Positions 1,948-56,260 of a DNA stretch of 64,000 bases are shown piece by piece. The notes under the pieces were generated by a model, which was given only the letters and a program-made list of their open reading frames with translations, did not search any database and was not told the DNA's origin. The stretch's first letter is position 1, and each line of letters opens with the position of its first letter. The position numbers were made by a program, and so were the translations under genes. The stretch lies in the IMG/VR virus record IMGVR_UViG_3300020608_000013, positions 148,021-212,020 of that record; one strand, 5' to 3'.

Positions 1948-2416
1948 ATTTACTATTTATACCGTTATACGATTTCAATACTAAATAAAGTAGACCAGGA
2001 CTATAACGCCAAGGTTCGTCAAGTCGTAGTAGACTACCCACCCACTCTGAACAAAAATATTGGTTTTCGTTATGGGTACGTACCTTCAATAACTGACCTA
2101 CCAGAACACCTAGTAGATCGTAGTTAGCGTTTTTCGTACTCTTGTAGTAAGCCTCAACATCCTCTTGGTCTACCCAATCAATCGGTACAAAGTCCCAGTT
2201 TTCGGGTTTAATACAAAGTTCTCGTTTAACAACACCACCGTCTCTAAATGAAGAGGTGTATGCTAAAACCTTTGTACCTGCATCAAAATCATTAGGGTTA
2301 AAATCATTATCACAAACTACGAACTCTACATGTGAGTAGATACTAAATGTTCGTAGGCGAATGGATTTATCGGTAATATTACCCTTACCTTTATAAAACA
2401 TTGCGTAGTATTTCAT
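1901..2416 (-). CDS. Permuted papain-like NlpC/P60 (YaeF/YiiX-type) amidase/peptidase
   Basis: YSHVE (His) near the N-terminus, then YDLLG and FCSEWV (catalytic Cys) near the C-terminus: the circularly permuted order; GGAG RBS. Confidence 0.75.
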   Translation of the reverse strand: MKYYAMFYKGKGNITDKSIRLRTFSIYSHVEFVVCDNDFNPNDFDAGTKVLAYTSSFRDGGVVKRELCIKPENWDFVPIDWVDQEDVEAYYKSTKNANYDLLGVLVGQLLKVRTHNENQYFCSEWVGSLLRLDEPWRYSPGLLYLVLKSYNGINSKYVEKSYVEKTINSTL

Positions 2417-2481
2417 TTGTTACTCCTAACGGTTGACTACTATCAATGAATTATGAGTAGGGTAAACGCTATCGTGTTCGT

Positions 2482-2901
2482 TTAGTACCAACCTCGACCA
2501 CGACCAATATGGTCACTTGAGACCCCGTATACCATACTCCTTTCGTTAGTTAACTTGTAAGTATTACTCAACGCATGGTGTTCACAAAAAAGCCAATCTA
2601 AATGTACCTTGTATTGGTTCGCTAAACCCTTACACATTTTTCTGTTCTTTTCATTAAGCGTTATTAAATAACGCACGATTTCCTCAATCGACTCGTTTAT
2701 AAACGAATTGGCTATCGCGCTAGTTTGAGTACGATGTAGCGCATTCATGTGGATTATCGCATTGAATATTTTTTCATCATTAGCCATTGCAACAATCGTT
2801 GGGTAATCCGTTCTACCAAAACGTTTATCCAGAACGGGCGTGCTTTGTATCGTCTTAACCAGGGTTGTTAAGCGGTCTTTTATAGGAAGGTATTCAAACA
2901 T
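2482..2901 (-). CDS. Hypothetical protein (139 aa)
   Basis: ORF track, downstream of a terminator. Confidence 0.7.
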   Translation of the reverse strand: MFEYLPIKDRLTTLVKTIQSTPVLDKRFGRTDYPTIVAMANDEKIFNAIIHMNALHRTQTSAIANSFINESIEEIVRYLITLNEKNRKMCKGLANQYKVHLDWLFCEHHALSNTYKLTNERSMVYGVSSDHIGRGRGWY

Positions 2902-2925
2902 AACTAATCTCTATTTATGACGGTG

Positions 2926-2963
2926 AAAAAAAAAATAGGTTAGCCCGAAGACTAACCTATTTT
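2926..2963 (-). terminator. Intrinsic terminator with cUUCGg tetraloop
   Basis: - strand AATAGGTTAGT-C-TTCG-G-GCTAACCTATT followed by a T-tract. Confidence 0.85.
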
Positions 2964-2966
2964 GAA

Positions 2967-3155
2967 CTACTTATAAACTAGTTCCCATGTGTAAGACACC
3001 CAGTTATTCTCAAGGTTATCCAACCATTTTCCCTTCAACGCATGATAATGTTCGTTGCTAGGAATAGGGTGGTCATCTACGTGATTTTTTAACTTTGAGT
3101 AATCTAAGTGTTTTGATACTGGTGTGTCTATCGGTCTCTTTGGGGTTTCTACCAT
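2967..3155 (-). CDS. Hypothetical protein (62 aa)
   Basis: ORF track; GGAGGAG RBS. Confidence 0.7.
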   Translation of the reverse strand: MVETPKRPIDTPVSKHLDYSKLKNHVDDHPIPSNEHYHALKGKWLDNLENNWVSYTWELVYK

Positions 3156-3283
3156 AAACTCTCCTCCACCTCTTCTAAGATTGCATCGGCCTCCTCTACA
3201 AGGTCGGAATAGTCATCAAATGGAATTTCGGGTAAAGTTTGCCCTTGATCTTGGTCTTGTGTTTCATTGGGGTCGTTACACAT
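3149..3283 (-). CDS. Unannotated acidic microprotein (44 aa, MCNDPNETQDQDQGQTLPEIPFDDYSDLVEEADAILEEVEESLW)
   Basis: Translated by hand; AGAGGA RBS; fills the gap and overlaps the next start; 15 D/E, no K/R. Confidence 0.7.
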   Translation of the reverse strand: MCNDPNETQDQDQGQTLPEIPFDDYSDLVEEADAILEEVEESLW

Positions 3284-3346
3284 AATATGTTCCTCTTGCG
3301 GTATAGTAAATAGAAACTTCAGTAGCCCGCAAATTACTACTGAAAC

Positions 3347-3508
3347 TCAATACTTTGTTTCGCCGACTTTATTCACTTTAAGACGTTTTCGATGTTTGGA
3401 GGTTGCCTCAACCATTATCTCATCGACCCGTTGTAGAAACTTTTCTTGTTTACGCTTGTCCTCTTCAGGCGAAATCTTAACGTAAGAGGGTACATAGATT
3501 TGATACAT
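3347..3508 (-). CDS. Unannotated small basic protein (53 aa, MYQIYVPSYVKISPEEDKRKQEKF...)
   Basis: Translated by hand; fills the gap in a - strand operon. Confidence 0.55.
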   Translation of the reverse strand: MYQIYVPSYVKISPEEDKRKQEKFLQRVDEIMVEATSKHRKRLKVNKVGETKY

Positions 3509-3519
3509 ATTAAGATACC

Positions 3520-3969
3520 TTATTTAATTTTGATTAGTTTTTTCTTCAGTGGCTTTTTGAAGCCTAATAGTACTGCTAAGGTGAAGCTAAACCAATTAGT
3601 CTTTACAAACTTTTTAAGTGTTTGTAAATCCCCTATTTCATATAAGGTGAGACTATCATCTCTAAGGGTAATAGAGGGGTAGCGAGTACCCTCTAATTTG
3701 AGAAGGTTTATTAGCGTGTATAAGGTGCAATTTGTCAGGTTAGTTGTTCTTGACGCAGACCTTGGTAGCTTATAATCACCTTCGATAAATGAGTCTTGCT
3801 CAACGCCGTTGGTTTTGGTCTCATAACCAATTATTTTAACCATGTCGTTGTTATAGATGCCGAACGCATAGGTTCGGTTTTTTGTCGTTGTGTTCATTTT
3901 ATCATTCCTCTGTATTAGTTGCGGTAAAACAACCTTCAAGTACGTCACACGTTCGGCGTGTGAATTCAT
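3520..3969 (-). CDS. Hypothetical protein (149 aa), short hydrophobic segment near the C-terminus
   Basis: ORF track. Confidence 0.65.
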   Translation of the reverse strand: MNSHAERVTYLKVVLPQLIQRNDKMNTTTKNRTYAFGIYNNDMVKIIGYETKTNGVEQDSFIEGDYKLPRSASRTTNLTNCTLYTLINLLKLEGTRYPSITLRDDSLTLYEIGDLQTLKKFVKTNWFSFTLAVLLGFKKPLKKKLIKIK

Positions 3970-10911: not shown

Positions 10912-10947
10912 TACACGTTACTATAGCTTAAGCTATAGTAACGTGTA
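10912..10947. terminator. 36-bp perfect palindrome between convergent genes (bidirectional terminator candidate)
   Basis: TACACGTTACTATAGCTT/AAGCTATAGTAACGTGTA. Confidence 0.7.
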
Positions 10948-14408: not shown

Positions 14409-15209
14409 TTAATTTGCAGTAGTTGTAAGATTCTTTAATAAATTTACTAAGTCTATTAATGGTCGAATCTCTGGATATAGTGACTTTTGTAAGTCAAGTT
14501 CTCCGCAACCATTAACTTCGTAATGTTTCACCATCTCTTCTAACGGTGCTTTGATCACACTATCCTTCTTCAAAAAATCTGCAATAACCTCACACTCTTC
14601 TTCAGAGTGGTATTTAGCCACTACACGAAGAACATAGCGTTTTACGTGAGTCATGTTAAAAAACTCCTCGTGAGTGCCCATGTAAATTAATAGGCTAGTT
14701 AACGACAAGATTTGTTTTGTAGGTTTTAATTGCATTAAAAAGGAAAGGTCGTTGTTTTTATTGGGAGGTAGTCTACGTTCTATAGCACGCTTATAGTAAG
14801 CTATTTTGTCGAAATATTTACTAACCGCACTATCCTTCGTATCTTGTACATACCCTTTTGGATATTTCAATGGGTCGTTTCTCATTAGGGTGGCAAGGTC
14901 TACTGCTTGTTCCTTGGGTATCTCAAACGCTTCCGCATGTTCATAGTAGTCTGCACTACCCCAATAACTGCGTAGATAAGACGGTGTAGCATTTAATAGA
15001 GCGTTATTCGCAAAATGCTCGATTGTTGCAACAAATCGGTAGTGTTTGGGTATATCGTCTAAAGGCGGTCTTTTCTTTTTCTTGCTTTGAGTTCCAAAAG
15101 CGCTCAAATCGTTCCAATTGATCAATGTTCTATCAAATTCTTCAAGCGCTTCCAACACTTGTTTCTCTGATGGTGTTCCCGCAAGGTCTGACGAGTCTTC
15201 TTTAGTCAT
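14409..15209 (-). CDS. Hypothetical protein, paralogue family A (266 aa)
   Basis: Shares SYWG..Y.EHA, LTSLLI..G...EFF.M..VK and LYPE with 15765..16904. Confidence 0.85.
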   Translation of the reverse strand: MTKEDSSDLAGTPSEKQVLEALEEFDRTLINWNDLSAFGTQSKKKKRPPLDDIPKHYRFVATIEHFANNALLNATPSYLRSYWGSADYYEHAEAFEIPKEQAVDLATLMRNDPLKYPKGYVQDTKDSAVSKYFDKIAYYKRAIERRLPPNKNNDLSFLMQLKPTKQILSLTSLLIYMGTHEEFFNMTHVKRYVLRVVAKYHSEEECEVIADFLKKDSVIKAPLEEMVKHYEVNGCGELDLQKSLYPEIRPLIDLVNLLKNLTTTAN

Positions 15210-15270: not shown

Positions 15271-15280
15271 TATAATATAC
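15271..15280 (-). promoter_or_regulatory. Putative early-promoter motif GTATATTATA with imperfect downstream stem (15237-15264)
   Basis: Motif copy just downstream of a terminator. Confidence 0.7.
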
Positions 15281-15312
15281 GCCTGTATTAATTTATATTA
15301 AAACACTTTTTC

Positions 15313-15369
15313 AAAAAAAAATAAACTAGAGTAATATAGACCAAGTTGGGCAACCCAACTTGGTCTATA
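15313..15369 (-). terminator. Intrinsic terminator
   Basis: 16-bp perfect stem TATAGACCAAGTTGGG/CCCAACTTGGTCTATA; T9 tract downstream on the - strand. Confidence 0.8.
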
Positions 15370-15394
15370 CCTTCTATCAACCTGCGTAAATTCT

Positions 15395-15418
15395 AATTGT
15401 GTCGAATTCGACATAATT
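15395..15418. repeat. Near-perfect palindrome centred on TCGAATTCGA (copy 2)
   Basis: AATTGTGTCGAATTCGACATAATT, one mismatch; - strand reads FNYVEFDTIR. Confidence 0.8.
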
Positions 15419-15473
15419 AAAACATCGTCATACATACTTTTTAAACAAATCGACGTTCTTAAAGTTAATTAAT

Positions 15474-15762
15474 TCAACTATCTTTCGTCAGGAGACGTAT
15501 TTACTGAATAGCTGTTTTGTTTAACAGTTCAAGACGTTCTTGCTGTGGCGTACATTAAGCGTTTCTAGATTAGCAAAACAAGCCAGTTGCGAAACGTCTG
15601 CATACCACCGTAACGACCTACTCTACTTTGTATACCTATAGCGTTGGTAGCCTGAACCCATTCTTTAACGCTAATTATATAGCTATTCAAACCTACAACA
15701 CTTCTAATTCTATCGAATTCGATAGAATTAGAATTAGGGTTATAAATGCGTTCCCAAACGCC
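15474..15762 (-). pseudogene. Decayed KilA-N domain DNA-binding protein fragment
   Basis: Hand translation GVWERIYNPNSNSIEFDRIRSVVGLNSYIISVKEWVQATNAIGIQSRVGRYGG, frameshift, YADVSQLACFANLETLN, frameshift, QQERLELLNKTAIQ*; matches N- and C-terminal blocks of bacterial KilA-N proteins as recalled; no start codon. Confidence 0.8.
15702..15733. repeat. 32-bp perfect palindrome centred on TCGAATTCGA (copy 1)
   Basis: TTCTAATTCTATCGAA/TTCGATAGAATTAGAA. Confidence 0.9.
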
Positions 15763-15764
15763 TT

Positions 15765-16904
15765 CTACATTTTTTGACTTCTAATAGCGCCGTCTAGTGA
15801 TTTAGCGATATTTAAGAACGGTTTTACTTCTGGATAGAGTGTTTCATACAAATCCCAGTCGTTGCTACCGCCTCCACCATAGTGACTAGCCATTGCTTGC
15901 GTGACCGTATTAAAAGTGTCTGTAAGTAGAAGCGTTTTAAGCATGTCGTGTTCTTGCTTACGGTGGTTCTTCATCACAATATCAACAACCGCCGTTTTTA
16001 CGCGAGACATACTGAAAAACTCACTATATTCCCCGACTACAATTAACAGACTTGTGAGACGAATCGCCTCTAAAGAAGGTATTAACTGACTTAATTGACT
16101 TTTACATACGTAGCAGTCAGGTGTTCTACTTTTAATAACACTTTCATAATACTGTACTGTACGGAAAAACTCGTCGATAATTTTCCCCTCTTTTTCACAA
16201 ACGTTACTTTCGTTGAATGTGTAATCTTTATTCTTAATTAAGGTGTAGAGCTTCCCAACTTCCGTATCGGTTAGACCAAGCGCTTTCGCATGTTCAGCAT
16301 ACGCTTCACCTCCCCAGTAACTAAGGAGATAGCTTGCCGCATCGTCGCCCAATGCCTTTTTTGCGTAATACTCTACAGTACTGATAACACGATTATATTT
16401 AGGTAAGTCAAGTAGATTAATAGGCTCTCCCGAAAGACAGTCGGTCATTTCTTTAAGTGTTGACGTTTCGCCACCTAGCTTCTTTTTGAGGTAGTTTTCG
16501 TATCCATTGGAAATTTCAGTGCGAACTGCCGCTAACGCACGATCTACGGCTTCACTAACCTCCTGTCTTACACGACGCTTCGTCTCTTCTTCAACCTCCG
16601 AAGACGCTTCTTTGCCAGACACCTTACTTGCCCGTTCTTTAAACGTCGTTGTCTCTGCCTCCAACGCTTCTTGAAGTTTAGTAGTGCTAAAGTGACTTCC
16701 ATGTGTGTCCATTGCTAGCTCCTCTTTTAAATCATTCACGAACATCATTGCACGGAGAAAGTGTATTGATTTATTTTCAAATTCGCCACAATAGGTTATG
16801 AAATCACGTTGAGTTGGTGTCAAAACCTCTTCATTCTTACCTATCCCGTAAACATGTTTGTGGAAAAATTTATCAATAGGTGTCGTTAAAGGCGCTTTTT
16901 CCAA
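15765..16904 (-). CDS. Hypothetical protein, paralogue family A (379 aa) with extra N-terminal coiled region
   Basis: C-terminal ~190 aa aligns by eye with 14409..15209. Confidence 0.85.
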   Translation of the reverse strand: MEKAPLTTPIDKFFHKHVYGIGKNEEVLTPTQRDFITYCGEFENKSIHFLRAMMFVNDLKEELAMDTHGSHFSTTKLQEALEAETTTFKERASKVSGKEASSEVEEETKRRVRQEVSEAVDRALAAVRTEISNGYENYLKKKLGGETSTLKEMTDCLSGEPINLLDLPKYNRVISTVEYYAKKALGDDAASYLLSYWGGEAYAEHAKALGLTDTEVGKLYTLIKNKDYTFNESNVCEKEGKIIDEFFRTVQYYESVIKSRTPDCYVCKSQLSQLIPSLEAIRLTSLLIVVGEYSEFFSMSRVKTAVVDIVMKNHRKQEHDMLKTLLLTDTFNTVTQAMASHYGGGGSNDWDLYETLYPEVKPFLNIAKSLDGAIRSQKM

Positions 16905-18891: not shown

Positions 18892-18933
18892 ATTAGAGGG
18901 TCTAGTGTGCTATAGCACACTAGACCCTCTAAT
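18892..18933. repeat. 42-bp perfect intergenic palindrome
   Basis: ATTAGAGGGTCTAGTGTGCTA/TAGCACACTAGACCCTCTAAT; no U-tract. Confidence 0.9.
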
Positions 18934-22546: not shown

Positions 22547-22587
22547 TTATGGTTGTTAAATATTTAACAACCATAATTATAATATAT
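22547..22587 (-). promoter_or_regulatory. Promoter motif (22578-22587) abutting a 30-bp perfect palindrome (22547-22576)
   Basis: ATATATTATA then TTATGGTTGTTAAAT/ATTTAACAACCATAA. Confidence 0.7.
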
Positions 22588-36613: not shown

Positions 36614-36639
36614 GACCATGTTCATATATGAACATGGTC
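36614..36639. repeat. 26-bp perfect intergenic palindrome
   Basis: GACCATGTTCATA/TATGAACATGGTC. Confidence 0.85.
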
Positions 36640-55354: not shown

Positions 55355-56260
55355 CTACACTCCTGTATATAAATCACTGCTTGTTAAATTTGGTTCATAA
55401 TAATCTACACTCCATCTTAACTCATTCTCAAGACCTGAGTTATTAGTATCGCGGTTAACGATACTATCAAGATAGTCTGCCAAATCATCAAAATTCTCAT
55501 CATCTCTAAAAATAATAACGCCTTGACCGTTAAGTCTATTTAAGAATTTTCGATGTTTGTTAAAATACGACAACTCCACATCGACTTGATGTAGATGGGG
55601 TAGTGTGAGTAACGCTTCCTCGCTTTTTAATGACGCGTTGCTTAAATAAAGGTATTCGACACTTGGTCCTATATACGAACAATCAAACGGCGCTGGATTA
55701 TCGCAAATTGCGAGCATTTGTAGATTAGGAAGCCTACTAATAAAACTAACCTCAGTCATATCAGTTTCCCATAACCATAGGGTCGAAATAGCTTCTAATA
55801 TAATGTGATCATTATCAATGCCATATAGCGAATGGGCAAAAACCGATTCTTCTAACCAGAAATCTTCGTTACTCAACGCGTCTATCACGCTACCGCGTAG
55901 CGCCTTTGGGTACTTAAACACATACTGAGCGATACCAATAACATCACAGTGTGTTCTTATAGTATCAGGCACTTCCCCATCTTTATGAACAATTAGGCGT
56001 TTTAAATCTGGGGCGACCTTTGGTAGTGCGTCTATATTACGCCAAGTGGCGTTACTTATATTCAATACCCGCACACCCGTCAAGTCAAGTTTTTCTAAAT
56101 CGATGAAATTCTCATAACACACTGTTAGTATGCTAACAGTGTCTATGCCAACAGCGTCAATCCAACCGATGTCGTCATTATCCTCAATAATAAATTCAAC
56201 ATTATTTTTACGGGCTTTGTTTTTCAAAAAACGAGCATTAACTCTATCTACTTTGTACAT
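55355..56260 (-). CDS. LRR-like array protein (301 aa)
   Basis: LTGVRVLNISN, LPNLQMLAICDN, VEYLYLSN, LPHLHQVDV. Confidence 0.85.
   Translation of the reverse strand: MYKVDRVNARFLKNKARKNNVEFIIEDNDDIGWIDAVGIDTVSILTVCYENFIDLEKLDLTGVRVLNISNATWRNIDALPKVAPDLKRLIVHKDGEVPDTIRTHCDVIGIAQYVFKYPKALRGSVIDALSNEDFWLEESVFAHSLYGIDNDHIILEAISTLWLWETDMTEVSFISRLPNLQMLAICDNPAPFDCSYIGPSVEYLYLSNASLKSEEALLTLPHLHQVDVELSYFNKHRKFLNRLNGQGVIIFRDDENFDDLADYLDSIVNRDTNNSGLENELRWSVDYYEPNLTSSDLYTGV

Follow-up and report, generated by a model that had tools for sequence, protein, structure and literature searches.

A perfect 32-bp palindrome in a broken KilA-N gene of a jumbo phage marks an undescribed DNA element found in nearly every gene copy examined of the PDC-S22 family and, without the gene, in many other phage genomes

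Introduction

Why should a short intergenic stretch of a jumbo phage genome, which no longer encodes a functional product, retain a perfect 32-bp palindrome within the codons of a decayed gene? The stretch lies in a 64,000-nt window, i.e. the last 64 kb of the 212,020-bp virus record IMGVR_UViG_3300020608_000013, which has direct terminal repeats; all coordinates below are those of the window. A preliminary description, made from the sequence alone, had recognized here the minus-strand remains of a KilA-N gene lacking its middle part and carrying a frameshift, bracketed by two homologous GAATTC-centred palindromes with a doubtful third copy, and had proposed that host or mobile DNA was captured between two paralogous phage genes by recombination at a palindromic site that might be an unrecognized recombination or operator site travelling with KilA-N genes. 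We have therefore asked what the remnant is, whether the palindrome is a property of the gene family or of this phage, and which function, if any, can be assigned to it.

Results

A remnant of a PDC-S22-type KilA-N gene in the 3' untranslated region of a phage gene

The features of the locus are collected in Table 1. The translations given in the preliminary description were all found in the 555-bp gap between two minus-strand phage genes, the missing middle and the frameshift are real, and the flanking genes are paralogues (33% identity, E 3e-39). Therefore, the observation as such was confirmed, with the only corrections that the second palindrome is slightly longer than first reported and that the putative third copy is not a palindrome. 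The homology begins within 10 nt of the stop codon of the upstream gene and ends 10 nt before an intrinsic terminator-like hairpin, the foreign DNA thus filling the 3' untranslated region exactly. No other piece of the gene was found anywhere in the 212-kb genome, and the G+C content of the stretch is like that of the rest of the phage.

Table 1. Features of the remnant and its surroundings (window coordinates; residues refer to a 276-aa homologue)
Position	Strand	Feature	Supporting observation
15765-16904	-	Upstream phage gene (379 aa), paralogue of the downstream gene; the insert begins at its stop codon	33% identity, E 3e-39
15601-15762	-	Remnant piece A, residues 55-108, open frame	PADLOC PDC-S22, E 3.2e-20, profile positions 57-110 of 281; tblastn 45-59% identity, E down to 2e-18
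15702-15733		Palindrome 1, perfect, 16+16 bp centred on GAA|TTC, encoding residues ~64-75; pair 14 is C-G (TTCTAA...TTAGAA), replacing the invariant Phe of the family with Ser	-11.9 kcal/mol as single-stranded DNA, z -9.2
~15600-15604	-	Junction marking a deletion of about 108 codons (residues ~109-216)	tblastn mapping
15554-15604	-	Remnant piece B, residues ~217-235, second frame	tblastn with the Xenorhabdus homologue, query residues 215-235
15471-15539	-	Remnant piece C, residues ~246-268, third frame, premature stop	tblastn with another homologue, query 246-268, 74% identity, E 1e-7
15441-15470	-	Possible third unit (reads NFKNV-DLFKK), resembling the palindrome unit with its central six bases lost; not a palindrome	z +0.3, does not fold; weak
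15391-15422		Palindrome 2, 14 of 16 pairs, inner half-site type TTATG	-5.3 kcal/mol, z -1.5
15380-15421	-	Second partial copy of codons 65-78 (palindrome plus the Ala-Gly codons), right end of the foreign DNA	44-nt direct repeat (15379-15422 against 15690-15733), 77% identical; tblastn query residues 65-78
15333-15371	-	Intrinsic terminator-like hairpin plus T run, directly after the insert	Inverted repeat
14409-15209	-	Downstream phage gene (266 aa), paralogue of the upstream gene; promoter-like site at 15272-15301	33% identity, E 3e-39

The identity of the remnant rests on several lines of evidence. Profile searches with the 65-aa open fragment alone gave no match in Pfam (E <= 1) or NCBIfam and only two weak rows in PHROGs (best phrog_32500, E 0.029), the fragment covering less than half of the KilA-N domain (PF04383). 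However, the PADLOC model of the phage defence candidate PDC-S22 matched it, and tblastn retrieved genes annotated as KilA-N domain-containing proteins on plasmids and phages with E 1e-13 to 1e-14 and 45-58% identity. Full-length homologues (~276 aa) match PDC-S22 (E 1e-130), Pfam KilA-N over residues 12-139 (E 2e-20 to 8e-19) and PHROG 2657 (E 3e-67), and three pieces of the remnant map collinearly on such a homologue. With the first 54 residues and residues ~109-216 absent, two frameshifts and a premature stop, this is not an intact gene able to make the protein. The absence of any similarity to KilA-N proteins had been named in advance as an outcome that would overturn the assignment, and such similarity was found.

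Palindrome 1 is one of only eight perfect palindromes of 20 bp or more in the whole genome, and palindromes 1 and 2 are its only two TCGAATTCGA sites. The motif test applied to the third unit was designed after inspection of the sequence and is circular, although the motif occurs once in 212 kb; a loose motif match at 55539-55564 is not a palindrome and is taken as chance. The inner half-site type of palindrome 2 is also found in three genes of our homologue set (L134, L135 and L155, where L numbers denote the retrieved loci) and in stacked upstream copies elsewhere. Neither palindrome was called as a terminator.

The palindrome is a nucleotide-level feature of the gene family

Inspection of the same codons in seven homologues from plasmids and a Staphylococcus phage revealed a palindrome with different, compensated inner bases in six of them. 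We then retrieved 160 loci from genomes and viral contigs, which span many bacterial phyla, candidate-phyla bacteria, Nanoarchaeota and Methanocella and whose members are 51-67% identical across bacterial phyla, candidate-phyla bacteria and archaea. Of 172 gene copies in 167 loci, 171 carry a GAATTC-centred 16+16 palindrome at these codons and 160 have 13 or more of 16 pairs; the loci are the best-scoring 80 from each collection (80 of 588 hits in the case of genomes), so that more distant members may differ. The general form is TTTTAA-N5-TCGAA|TTCGA-N5-TTAAAA, ending sharply at pair 16. On 146 distinct 48-mers 94.6% of cells are paired, 275 cells changed on both sides against 71.9 +/- 10.2 in shuffles (0 of 500), the covariation score is 0.355 against 0.120, and slid controls reach at most 64% pairing.

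Synonymous sites within the palindrome are frozen. Glu is encoded by GAA in 101 cases and by GAG in none, against 17-45% GAG at other Glu positions of the gene; Phe by TTC in 104 and TTT in 2, its usage being mixed elsewhere; Lys by AAA in 56 and AAG in none, against 35-53% AAG elsewhere; and the Ile, Val or Leu codon preceding Glu ends in C in 97 of 98 cases (one GTG), a position for which usage elsewhere was not compared. The inner bases force residue pairs that make no chemical sense, such as Ser-Gly, Pro-Gly, Leu-Gln and Val-His, which are exactly reverse-complement codons. This is selection on the nucleic acid, not on the protein. The inner 5 bp come in 44 or more half-site types and evolve fast, differing in 33-55% of protein pairs that are 80-90% identical.

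The element is not tied to the reading frame

The one homologue lacking the internal palindrome, from Latilactobacillus (L008), has a similar palindrome 32 nt upstream of its start codon. About 12 of ~150 distinct loci have one to four extra palindromes upstream of an intact gene, and in locus L289 one lies 70 nt downstream of the gene, as in the window. KilA-N genes elsewhere showing neither the palindrome nor additional flanking copies was the other result that the preliminary description had set as refuting its reading, and this is not what was observed. In addition, 5' gene fragments that end 0-9 nt after their palindrome, about 50 nt before the next start codon, lie upstream of intact genes in six loci (L026, L047, L056, L062, L087 and L144), whereas L071 has a fragment that starts at the palindrome. 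PHROG 32500 (76 aa) is a family made of such fragments.

Scanning of viral contigs for the motif with free inner bases retrieved at least 118 stretches, against 1 for the reversed control pattern; of 92 of these loci analysed, 54 have no KilA-N gene over the site. A second scan for the TTCTAA...TTAGAA form gave 21 contigs, all without the gene and without a second palindrome nearby. Only 16 of these 75 solitary sites lie in an ORF of 100 aa or more, although such ORFs cover 72% of those loci, and only 6 are followed by a T run. They lie in either orientation and their neighbourhoods vary widely. Of 43 distinct solitary sites, 30 have mismatched arms, yet 55% of those arms are exact half-sites known from genes, against 4.3% expected, so that they look like hybrids.

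Palindrome 1 itself has the C-G pair at position 14 that is seen in non-coding copies, whereas in intact genes this position is T-A or T-G because the left base lies in the invariant Phe codon; the dead gene has thus drifted, or been selected, towards the form of the free element. A distant relative of the phage (G001, 154.5 kb; syntenic proteins 25-39% identical) has one solitary perfect palindrome that differs from palindrome 1 by a single compensated pair, lies at a non-syntenic place and is accompanied by no KilA-N gene in the record. The exact window-type palindrome also occurs in five metagenome contigs: inside genes, in a frameshifted pseudogene 77% identical to the window over 102 nt, and as solitary copies.

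An empty site had been proposed as a means of checking the capture. Megablast and tblastn searches of the phage collection with the flanking genes, and two scans of viral contigs with the flanking proteins, found no relatives, and G001 is not syntenic at this place; read mapping, large protein searches and alternative genetic codes were not used in this study. Nor did the analysis include a census of the conserved core in paired phage-host genome sets, a tree-aware test of coupling between the inner type and residues outside codons 64-77, or exact breakpoint mapping of all fragments. The left end of the insert (15757-15765) lies about 30 nt before palindrome 1, and only the right end, 10 nt after palindrome 2, falls where fragments usually end.

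Predicted properties of the protein and its genomic neighbourhood

The AlphaFold2 model of one homologue (pLDDT 83.5) has a predicted N-terminal Mbp1/APSES-type DNA-binding fold (Z 10.0, rmsd 2.5 A over 86 residues aligned to the Mbp1 DNA-binding domain); the fold was tested on this homologue, not on the fragment. The C-terminal half is predicted to be all-helical and gave only non-specific helical matches at Z <= 5.1. No solved structure was found by sequence and Foldseek against PDB returned nothing at E <= 0.001; the idea that the protein is itself a nuclease or recombinase therefore has no support. A homodimer model passed its controls (score 0.62, best control 0.00), a mark reached by 20 of 30 proteins solved as pairs and 1 of 23 solved as single chains, with runs agreeing in at least 61% of contacts, partner pLDDT of at least 71 and a symmetric interface through helix 124-143. 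This supports pairing but does not prove it. Among the neighbours of the gene we found type I restriction-modification genes in 13 loci, cI-like repressors in 24, tyrosine integrases in 24 and large serine recombinases in 22 of the 167 loci, plus small serine recombinases in L002, L003 and L005; no family is constant.

Discussion

The interpretation advanced in the preliminary description is only partly supported by our data. The stretch is a KilA-N remnant, the palindrome is a feature of the gene family selected at the nucleotide level, it turns up as extra flanking copies and without any gene, and gene fragments in other genomes end at it, so that an unrecognized site travelling with KilA-N genes is a fair description. 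Neither the capture of this insert by recombination at the palindrome nor a role of the site in recombination, as an operator or in self-immunity has been shown. What our analysis does demonstrate is that window 15380-15762 is a dead, horizontally acquired piece of a PDC-S22-type gene and that its palindrome is a DNA-level element of the family, independent of the coding needs of the protein. All that follows on function is inference. We favour, tentatively and at somewhat less than even odds, that the palindrome is the DNA site recognized by the homodimeric KilA-N protein, kept inside or just upstream of the gene so that it cannot be separated from it, and serving as a self-recognition, self-immunity or operator site. 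The conserved 10-bp core is also the longest stretch shared by diverged copies, so that breaks and joins pile up there, which would explain the truncated fragments, the stacked copies and the hybrid arms; phages, including this one and its distant relative, keep the site without the gene, possibly because the site alone is useful to them.

Several facts fit poorly with this proposal. No binding, immunity or defence activity has been measured for PDC-S22, an untested candidate identified because it is embedded in BREX, DISARM and type I restriction systems, and none was assayed here. Extra upstream palindromes usually differ from the gene's own in the inner 5 bp (locus L287 is an exception), which hardly suits a simple cognate operator; moreover, a dimer that ignores these bases would not need them to be complementary, whereas one that reads them would need more than 40 specificities. 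Piece A has no stop codon, so the capture may be recent and the perfect palindrome may not be evidence of selection in this phage. It is tempting to speculate further, although we regard it as unlikely, that the palindrome is a portable anti-defence decoy: in its home gene it would switch off the PDC-S22 protein when the element carrying the gene replicates, its inner five base pairs setting which protein variant is silenced, and phages would capture and keep the bare site (and mobile elements stack several) to disarm the matching defence protein of their hosts, making it a DNA-only counter-defence spread across many phyla.

Other explanations have to be weighed against this reading, and sequence alone does not separate them. 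A dedicated recombination site, cut and rejoined at the core by a recombinase or structure-specific nuclease other than the KilA-N protein, perhaps on an extruded hairpin or cruciform as at integron attC sites, would let KilA-N genes move, stack and swap their 5' parts, the window holding a footprint of such an event. Fragments ending or starting at the palindrome, stacks of two to four copies, apparently hybrid arms, self-complementary inner bases with free sequence as a folded substrate needs, and the frequent integrase and serine recombinase neighbours speak in its favour. Yet exact crossover points vary, some hybrid sites are related by descent and the hybrid arms may be one lineage of related phage sites rather than many separate events, so that the evidence on junctions points neither way. 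No recombinase is a constant neighbour of a palindrome present in 171 of 172 genes (recombinase genes were not sought in the loci of the 21 TTCTAA-type solitary sites), a fully symmetric core gives no direction to a serine or tyrosine recombinase, a gene has no reason to keep a site that lets others break it, and the left end of the insert is not at a palindrome. We consider this reading unlikely, and the more specific one of an att site of a large serine recombinase was rejected because the central dinucleotide is symmetric and the recombinase is not constant.

It is likewise possible, but in our opinion improbable, that in this phage the stretch is inert junk, a recently captured pseudogene whose palindrome is perfect only because little time has passed or because replication slippage on the hairpin corrects one arm against the other (quasi-palindrome correction), which says nothing about its role in intact genes. 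The 54 undamaged codons of piece A, as similar to intact homologues as these are to each other, damage explicable by one deletion and two small indels, the imperfect palindrome 2, the decayed third unit and the phage-like G+C content agree with this view; the Phe-to-Ser change towards the non-coding form, the near-identical palindrome of G001 and the 75 solitary copies sitting mainly between genes do not. Least likely is an RNA hairpin acting in mRNA stability, processing, ribosome pausing or translational control, which in the window would be a hairpin in the 3' untranslated region. A 14-bp stem with an AAUU loop is predicted, the palindrome is transcribed in every gene, some upstream copies sit next to the ribosome-binding site (L008, L287 and L289) and the window copies lie between a stop codon and a terminator. 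However, mismatches show no wobble bias once the single codon-driven pair 14 is set aside (48 G-T against 43 A-C), which argues for DNA rather than RNA, the loop and closing pairs are the most conserved part, solitary copies occur in either orientation with few T runs, and no Rfam family matched the palindrome in four loci at E <= 1.

The remnant itself is ordinary phage debris, but it points to a palindrome written into the coding sequence of a very widespread and very mobile defence-candidate gene, changing through paired substitutions that impose odd residue pairs on the protein, and also living on its own in phage genomes. If it is the protein's own recognition site, it gives a direct handle on how KilA-N defence proteins tell self from non-self and would be a simple, searchable marker for a DNA-based counter-defence in phages; if it is a recombination site, it is a new kind of cassette joint. 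DNA elements embedded in KilA-N defence genes have a precedent, but we found no paper linking KilA-N with a palindrome.

Comparison with known systems

The in-frame selfish palindromic elements of Rickettsia also sit within protein-coding genes, but they are 100-150 bp long, present in many copies per genome and inserted into many unrelated genes, whereas the palindrome described here occupies one fixed place in one gene family, usually once per locus. Integron attC sites are imperfect palindromes with conserved outer and inner boxes and a variable but self-complementary middle, lie next to gene cassettes and can stack; they are 57-141 bp long, lie between cassettes, have extrahelical bases that mark the strand and depend on an IntI integrase, while our site lies inside a coding sequence, is fully symmetric and has no constant recombinase. 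Operators such as gal OI and lac O2 show that palindromic protein-binding sites can lie inside genes and pair with promoter-proximal copies, and the KilA-N/APSES fold, as in Mbp1 and Swi4, binds short CG-containing motifs; those operators are not conserved across phyla and show no compensatory change, and nothing in our data shows repression. PDC-S22, PF04383 and PHROG 2657 are protein families, and none of the descriptions consulted mentions a nucleotide element.

The closest precedent is BstA of the Salmonella prophage BTP1 (Owen et al. 2021, PMC8585504), a KilA-N abortive-infection protein encoded by mobile elements whose gene overlaps the aba element, which switches BstA off for the prophage that carries it. 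PDC-S22 homologues do not match the BstA model, the PADLOC scan of homologues returning only PDC-S22, the two share only the KilA-N domain, and aba is 63 bp long at the gene start with terminal direct repeats and is not a palindrome, whereas our element is a 32-bp palindrome about 200 nt inside the gene. On the other hand, both are short DNA elements that overlap the gene itself, so that gene and element stay linked, and that differ between homologues. aba works as DNA and in trans, its transcription having no effect, is specific to each homologue and makes phage P22 immune when moved into it, although how self is told from non-self is still unexplained for BstA and aba; neutralization of a cognate protein was not measured for the PDC-S22 palindrome. 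The solitary palindromes in phages are what such a system would predict.

Other palindromes and features of the phage genome

Besides the palindrome of the KilA-N remnant, the window contains four other long perfect palindromes without a loop, all of them unrelated in sequence to the KilA-N palindrome. Comparison with the ORF list placed three of these between genes, the location of the palindrome at 36614-36639 not having been checked, and one of them sits between convergent genes. This phage seems to use such palindromes as intergenic signals. GAATTC occurs 26 times in the whole genome (212,020 bp), whereas about 70 occurrences are expected by hand calculation from the base composition (38.7% G+C), which may reflect avoidance of an EcoRI-type site. 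The last nine residues of the 379-aa gene preceding the remnant have no counterpart in its paralogue and its stop codon abuts the foreign DNA; the insertion may have replaced the original end of this gene. The only relative of this phage that was found is the viral contig IMGVR_UViG_3300035661_000011 (154.5 kb; L294/G001), a distant one with synteny over about 8 kb at 25-39% protein identity.

Coordinates of the additional features
Sequence	Positions	Feature
Window	18892-18933	Perfect palindrome without a loop, 42 bp
Window	10912-10947	Perfect palindrome without a loop, 36 bp
Window	22547-22576	Perfect palindrome without a loop, 30 bp
Window	36614-36639	Perfect palindrome without a loop, 26 bp
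Window	15765-15795	Last nine residues of the 379-aa gene
L287 (metagenome contig)	1545-1960	Four palindromes stacked upstream of a KilA-N gene
L144, L146, L147, L149 (viral contigs)	about 1980-3530	Array of KilA-N gene copies

Palindromes and KilA-N genes in other loci

In the metagenome contig L287, two of the stacked palindromes share the inner bases of the internal palindrome of the gene itself and two are of other types, the copy at 1666 having GGAATTCC at its centre. The viral contigs L144, L146, L147 and L149 carry a frameshifted KilA-N gene, then a 5' fragment ending at its palindrome and then an intact gene, i.e. an array of three generations of the gene. Among loci L169-L260, fetched from viral contigs, solitary palindromes lie near the ends of the fetched loci more often than gene-borne ones do (34 of 54 within 2 kb; median 1.5 kb against 2.6 kb), which could reflect either prophage ends or assembly breaks at the palindrome. 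The PDC-S22 family is 57-63% identical to a Xenorhabdus plasmid protein even in archaea (loci L047 and L049 of Nanoarchaeota and L072 of Methanocella) and candidate-phyla bacteria (L038, L059 and L062), which points to a very wide and recent horizontal spread.
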